A model generated the notes under the pieces. That model was not told where the DNA came from, searched no databases, and saw only the letters and a program-made list of their open reading frames with translations. Positions 2,355-43,789 of a stretch of 64,000 bases of DNA are shown here, piece by piece. Position numbers and translations under genes: made by a program. How positions within the stretch are numbered: position 1 is the stretch's first letter; each line of letters begins with the position of its first letter. Origin of the DNA: Malacoraja senta (taxonomy: Eukaryota); NCBI GenBank assembly GCA_038087875.1, contig CM075984.1:11904001-11968000 (forward strand), read 5' to 3'.

Positions 2355-43789
<41,435 letters not shown>

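Follow-up and report, generated by a model that had tools for sequence, protein, structure and literature searches.

An apparently rewritten recognition helix in MECOM zinc finger 5 of the skate Malacoraja senta is almost certainly a consensus error of the genome assembly

Does the MECOM gene of the skate Malacoraja senta encode a fifth zinc finger with a rewritten recognition helix, or has the genome assembly misread a conventional one? The window considered here (the whole stretch of DNA that was analysed, 64,000 nucleotides in length) reads ACT TCT CGG GTC TCA AGG CAG on the minus strand from 36636 to 36616, and this translates to TSRVSRQ, just as a preliminary description of the locus had reported. 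MECOM is a key developmental and haematopoietic regulator under strong constraint, and the Leu replaced in TSRVSRQ is the structural Leu at the core of the zinc finger. It is almost certain, in our view, that TSRVSRQ arose through a consensus error of the genome assembly and that in the animal itself the helix of MECOM zinc finger 5 is the canonical TSSGLKQ.

The exon that carries this stretch (Table 1) reads as the finger 5 exon of MECOM/EVI1, and the gene assignment holds because mouse EVI1 (P0002) and Microtus MECOM (P0009) each match the exon at 89% identity, and because a protein search with the large exon gave 66-73% identity to MECOM (73% for the best relative) versus 48-49% to PRDM16. 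The exons encoding fingers 1-2, fingers 3-4, finger 5, and fingers 6-7 are collinear, all on the minus strand. The residues ACPECGK and HSSVKPFIC in the window are of the MECOM type, whereas PRDM16-like matches carry ACPDCGK and HSTVKPFIC. The last letter of the finger 5 exon is 36579, at a T|GTGAGT donor, and the acceptor is a tandem cagcag, so that the exon starts at either 36735 or 36732. It codes for 51 amino-acid letters plus a split Cys codon, which is finished by the next exon (~21599-20245, 1.35 kb). The four helix residues are the only internal differences between this exon and mouse EVI1.

Some other features of the gene region are worth recording. Both products of the tandem (NAGNAG) acceptor, which lies at 36733-36738 on the minus strand, are seen in mammals, mouse P0002 reading CAKQVFTD and Microtus P0009 reading CAKVFTD, and this one-codon alternative acceptor may be conserved from skate to mammals. 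Retroelement-like frames occur on both strands, all of them inside MECOM introns: long, GC-rich gag/pol-like open frames at 53426-56652 on the plus strand, with a frame of 460 residues at 55270-56652, and a reverse-transcriptase-like frame at 33741-34427 on the minus strand. A run of N at ~58230-58400, which is either an assembly gap or a masked stretch, has purine/pyrimidine-rich low-complexity flanks.

The canonical form of the helix is very well defined. A homologue search with the 112-residue frame that runs across the exon returned 92 fragments, all of which were compared, comprising vertebrate MECOM and PRDM16 as well as invertebrate orthologues, including one from a bark beetle. About 88 of the 92 extend over the helix; their sources range from insects to mammals, and every one of these fragments reads (T/S)SSGLKQ, with SSGLKQ preceded by A/N/G and then T/S; SRVSRQ occurs in none of them. 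The preliminary description had named TSSGLKQ as the sequence to be expected at this position, and the homologues bear this out. The same query found no protein fragment from the same species or a close relative, its best coverage coming from unrelated introns. Solved structures were found only for generic C2H2 fingers, none being of finger 5 of MECOM or PRDM16.

A purpose-written, frameshift-aware protein-to-DNA alignment of the exon with mouse EVI1 and two other homologues indicated that the window lacks a base near 36632 and has one too many near 36616. Judged from these alignments, a -1/+1 indel pair is the most economical description of the window sequence relative to its homologues. The same procedure found no frame breaks in the exons for fingers 1-2 and fingers 3-4 or in the large exon. 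Of the 10 orthologues aligned to the last of these, 9 show no frameshift, the exception being P0099, a partial protein from the frog Ranitomeya imitator, for which a compensated frameshift of ~25 residues was proposed against window positions 20341-20424. Because the nine other orthologues show none, this frameshift most likely belongs to the P0099 protein model and not to the window. At 73% identity, the best relative of the large exon is too distant to expose subtle hidden errors there.

The decisive comparison is with independent DNA data. Contigs built from public runs of four organisms (designated X1, X18, X43, and X27) were compared with positions 36000-37500 at 85% likeness. Of the sampled 31-letter words, X1 contains 0.74 for 35100-38100 and 0.73 for the exon, while further runs, from several other organisms, contain between about a fifth and two fifths, as expected for relatives diverged by a few per cent. 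A single X1 contig of 2,006 letters, with a word depth of 28.8, spans 36000-37492, showing 2 substitutions and 8 gaps against the window, with which it is collinear through the exon and both introns. Because there are only 2 substitutions in 1.5 kb, X1 appears to come from the same species as the window, or from the same individual. X18 and X43 yielded one contig each over 36000-37500, both with ~55 substitutions in 1.5 kb, which marks them as relatives diverged by ~4%.

All three of these contigs depart from the window at the same two places within the exon, lacking one letter at 36620 and having a G inserted behind 36631, and at both the entire depth backs the canonical letters (28.8 of 28.8 in X1). 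When both changes are applied, the minus strand reads ACT TCC TCG GGT CTC AAG CAG, or TSSGLKQ, and the stretch translates as KTFATSSGLKQHKHIH. The helix is thus canonical in this species and in two relatives; we infer that no reads of the assembled individual carry the window version. With both errors corrected, the exon matches that of mouse EVI1 at every residue except the Q of the tandem acceptor. The preliminary description had reconstructed a -1/+1 pair whose reversal restores TSSGLKQ, and the contigs reproduce both the pair and the restored peptide; the missing base is, however, a C (TCC TCG) and not the T that had been proposed (TCT TCG), both versions encoding Ser-Ser. It had also favoured paired errors of assembly or polishing as the likeliest cause, which is supported by the lack of both indels in X1, X18, and X43. 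Reads across 36600-36650, put forward there as a check, give canonical TSSGLKQ in the form of run contigs and so point to an assembly artefact, and the comparison with related species that it recommended gives the same helix in X18 and X43.

Table 1. Positions of the MECOM exons, the misread helix, and the assembly errors within the window.
Feature	Positions	Strand	Details
Low-accuracy assembly patch	36000..37500		8 single-letter indels and 2 substitutions vs the X1 contig
TSRVSRQ stretch, 21 letters	36616..36636	-	window reading; true reading in the species is TSSGLKQ according to the contigs
Spurious extra letter	36619..36620		window CC on + (GG of AAGGCAG on minus), single C in the contigs (X1, X18, X43)
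Missing letter	36631..36632		extra G behind 36631 on + (GAGGAAG), i.e., C on minus (TCC TCG), in the contigs (X1, X18, X43)
MECOM/EVI1 exon, end of zinc finger 4 and whole zinc finger 5	36579..36735	-	defined by splice sites and homologues
MECOM exon, zinc fingers 3-4	38402..38551	-	frame intact
MECOM exon, zinc fingers 1-2	40520..40717	-	frame intact
Large MECOM exon, zinc fingers 6-7 and linker region	20245..21599	-	open frame of ~451 codons, intact

No RNA runs of the window's species were found. From X27, a run that carries the label "RNA?", only a 46-letter piece at 36574-36619 matches the exon. A search for independent contigs around the other exons, made with two frames from the window, found none. 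Each run also has a second contig, of 1.8 kb for the DNA runs and 3.6 kb for X27, that matches the window only over 36573-36619, at ~89-93%, and whose match stops at the spurious extra C. This second contig is presumably the paralogous PRDM16 exon or, in the case of X27, a spliced transcript.

The two errors in the exon are not isolated. Relative to X1, the window differs by indels at 36198, 36201, 36518, 36620, 36631, 36890, 36954, and 36995 and by substitutions at 37135 and 37179, a density of differences that roughly accounts for the X1 word share of 0.74. All 8 indels make a run of identical letters longer or shorter by one (1<->2, 2<->3, or 3<->4), the runs being one to four letters long, and the window is short of a letter at 6 of the places and has one too many at the other 2. 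Both X18 and X43 side with X1 at 36518, 36620, 36631, 36890, and 36954, and X18 also does so at 36198 and 36201; at the eighth place the sequence of the relatives is replaced and no comparison is possible. The window has the derived state at every comparable indel, and the X1 side carries one private substitution. The relatives, in other words, agree with the X1 contig over the assembly.

Indels outnumber substitutions by 8 to 2 in this comparison, and eight indels for one or two substitutions is the opposite of what natural variation shows. On the assumption that ~15% of natural variants are indels, the probability of finding at least 8 of them among 10 differences is ~1e-5. The indel rate in the patch is 5.3 per kb, or ~1 per 190 bases. 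By our own arithmetic, an exon of 157 letters would at this rate have a ~15% chance of containing exactly two indels and, given the six missing and two extra letters, a ~6% chance of containing exactly two of opposite sign; a frame-preserving pair is therefore unsurprising in such a patch.

The low-accuracy patch probably extends over at least 3 kb. The three other MECOM exons provide ~1.7 kb of coding sequence without a frame break, and a rate of 5 indels per kb throughout would not leave this much coding sequence clean, so the poor base accuracy must be local and patchy along the window. A minisatellite at 14551-14997, which yields long artificial open frames on the plus strand, consists of 9.4 copies of a 48-letter unit that are 90% alike. 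There are no indels between its copies, which suggests that this region lies outside the error patch.

We propose that the extra C at 36619-36620 and the G missing after 36631 (plus strand) are base-run errors of opposite sign, and that the coincidence of two such errors in one exon kept the frame while four residues were misread. The surrounding patch is most likely a stretch of long-read consensus left untouched by short-read polishing, a cause that is read from the pattern of the errors. In vertebrate assemblies based on CLR data, short consensus-calling indels that cause frameshift errors are the commonest errors (Rhie et al. 2021, PMC8081667). In the Vertebrate Genomes Project, polishing reached 82% to 99.7% of the primary assembly, and some loci were missed because their reads mapped to a false duplicate or to the better copy on the alternate haplotype, the frameshift errors in TLK1 being an example (PMC8081667). 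The differences in the window resemble those errors in being nearly all single-letter base-run indels, in falling in a conserved gene, and in being confined to a patch while the neighbouring exons are clean. Unlike in those cases, the two errors in the window cancel, leaving no stop or broken frame, and frame-based quality checks are passed.

A second likeness is with bacterial assemblies. The Polypolish work (PMC8812927) describes homopolymer-length errors that persist after short-read polishing, and polishing that is unreliable where reads map ambiguously. The errors in the window are also in base-run length, with high-copy repeats on either side of the finger 5 exon (36306-36407 and 37463 onward), although most of the runs involved here are only 1-3 letters long and that work deals with bacterial assemblies. 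The repeat that begins at 37463 (GGTTTAGTTTATTGTCGCGTGTACC...) is of very high copy number, with a summed word depth of 5.6e5 to 1.7e6 in X1 and very high depth in the three other organisms too. A second piece at 36306-36407 has a moderate copy number (depth ~3,700) and is joined to 37463 in many contigs, so the two pieces are parts of one repeat family common to these species. No Rfam matches were found in 36000-38600.

Genuine compensatory frameshifts in protein evolution are paired indels that recode a short stretch. Taken alone, the window sequence looks exactly like one of these: two indels, one -1 and one +1, are separated by 11-14 letters and recode four residues. A real frameshift should, however, appear with both of its indels in independent data and in otherwise clean surroundings. 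Both indels are missing from X1 and the two relatives, and the 1.5 kb around them contains six further single-letter indels. Compared with finger 5 in the first zinc-finger domain of MECOM/EVI1 (PRDM3), the locus has the same exon order, and no difference is left after the errors are removed.

The best surviving alternative to a consensus error is that the assembled individual bears a real, perhaps heterozygous, compensated -1/+1 haplotype, of which the X1 contigs show only the canonical counterpart. Contigs show what is present, and they may drop a rare variant or collapse one allele of a heterozygous site, which means that a second haplotype could hide if X1 were the assembled sample itself. 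However, the whole of the X1 depth is canonical at both places, and a haplotype of this kind would need six more derived single-letter indels alongside only one derived substitution in 1.5 kb, with all of the indels in base-run length and a ratio of indels to substitutions unlike that of natural variation. It would also have lost the structural Leu, in a strongly constrained gene whose helix is invariant across bilaterian homologues. We consider such a haplotype in the assembled individual very improbable, and it is scarcely credible that the window version represents a true haplotype, whether rare or heterozygous, in which four recognition-helix residues, including the core Leu, are replaced. 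If it were, it would be a natural hypomorphic or altered-specificity MECOM allele.

A compensated frameshift that is fixed in the lineage of this skate, with zinc finger 5 rewired or disabled, would be compatible with the window sequence alone, and the preliminary description had allowed for a real compensatory frameshift altering this finger. The data give that idea no support, the run of the same species (depth 28.8) and both related species being canonical; a mislabelled X1 could save it only against the evidence of 2 substitutions in 1.5 kb, compared with ~55 for the relatives, and its probability is negligible. The chance that the exon comes from a MECOM paralogue or a decaying duplicate, and not from the functional gene, is just as negligible: the second contigs (~89% over 36573-36619) do show a paralogous exon, presumably of PRDM16, in these genomes, but this identity was rejected on the position of the exon in order and on the same strand with intact exons for fingers 1-2, fingers 3-4, and the large MECOM exon, its intact splice sites, its MECOM-type (ACPECGK, HSSVKPF) and not PRDM16-type (ACPDCGK, HSTVKPF) residues, and the collinearity of the same-species contig over the exon and both introns.

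A consensus error at this locus has consequences for how the assembly is used. Two cancelling one-letter errors escape every check based on open reading frames, and protein models derived from this assembly would carry the wrong recognition helix, with the risk that studies of zinc-finger specificity or lineage-specific change are led astray. The assembly has patches with ~1 indel per 190 bases, and frameshifts in this genome need read support before they are interpreted as pseudogenes or null alleles. For the biology of the animal the altered helix has no importance, its MECOM finger 5 being canonical.
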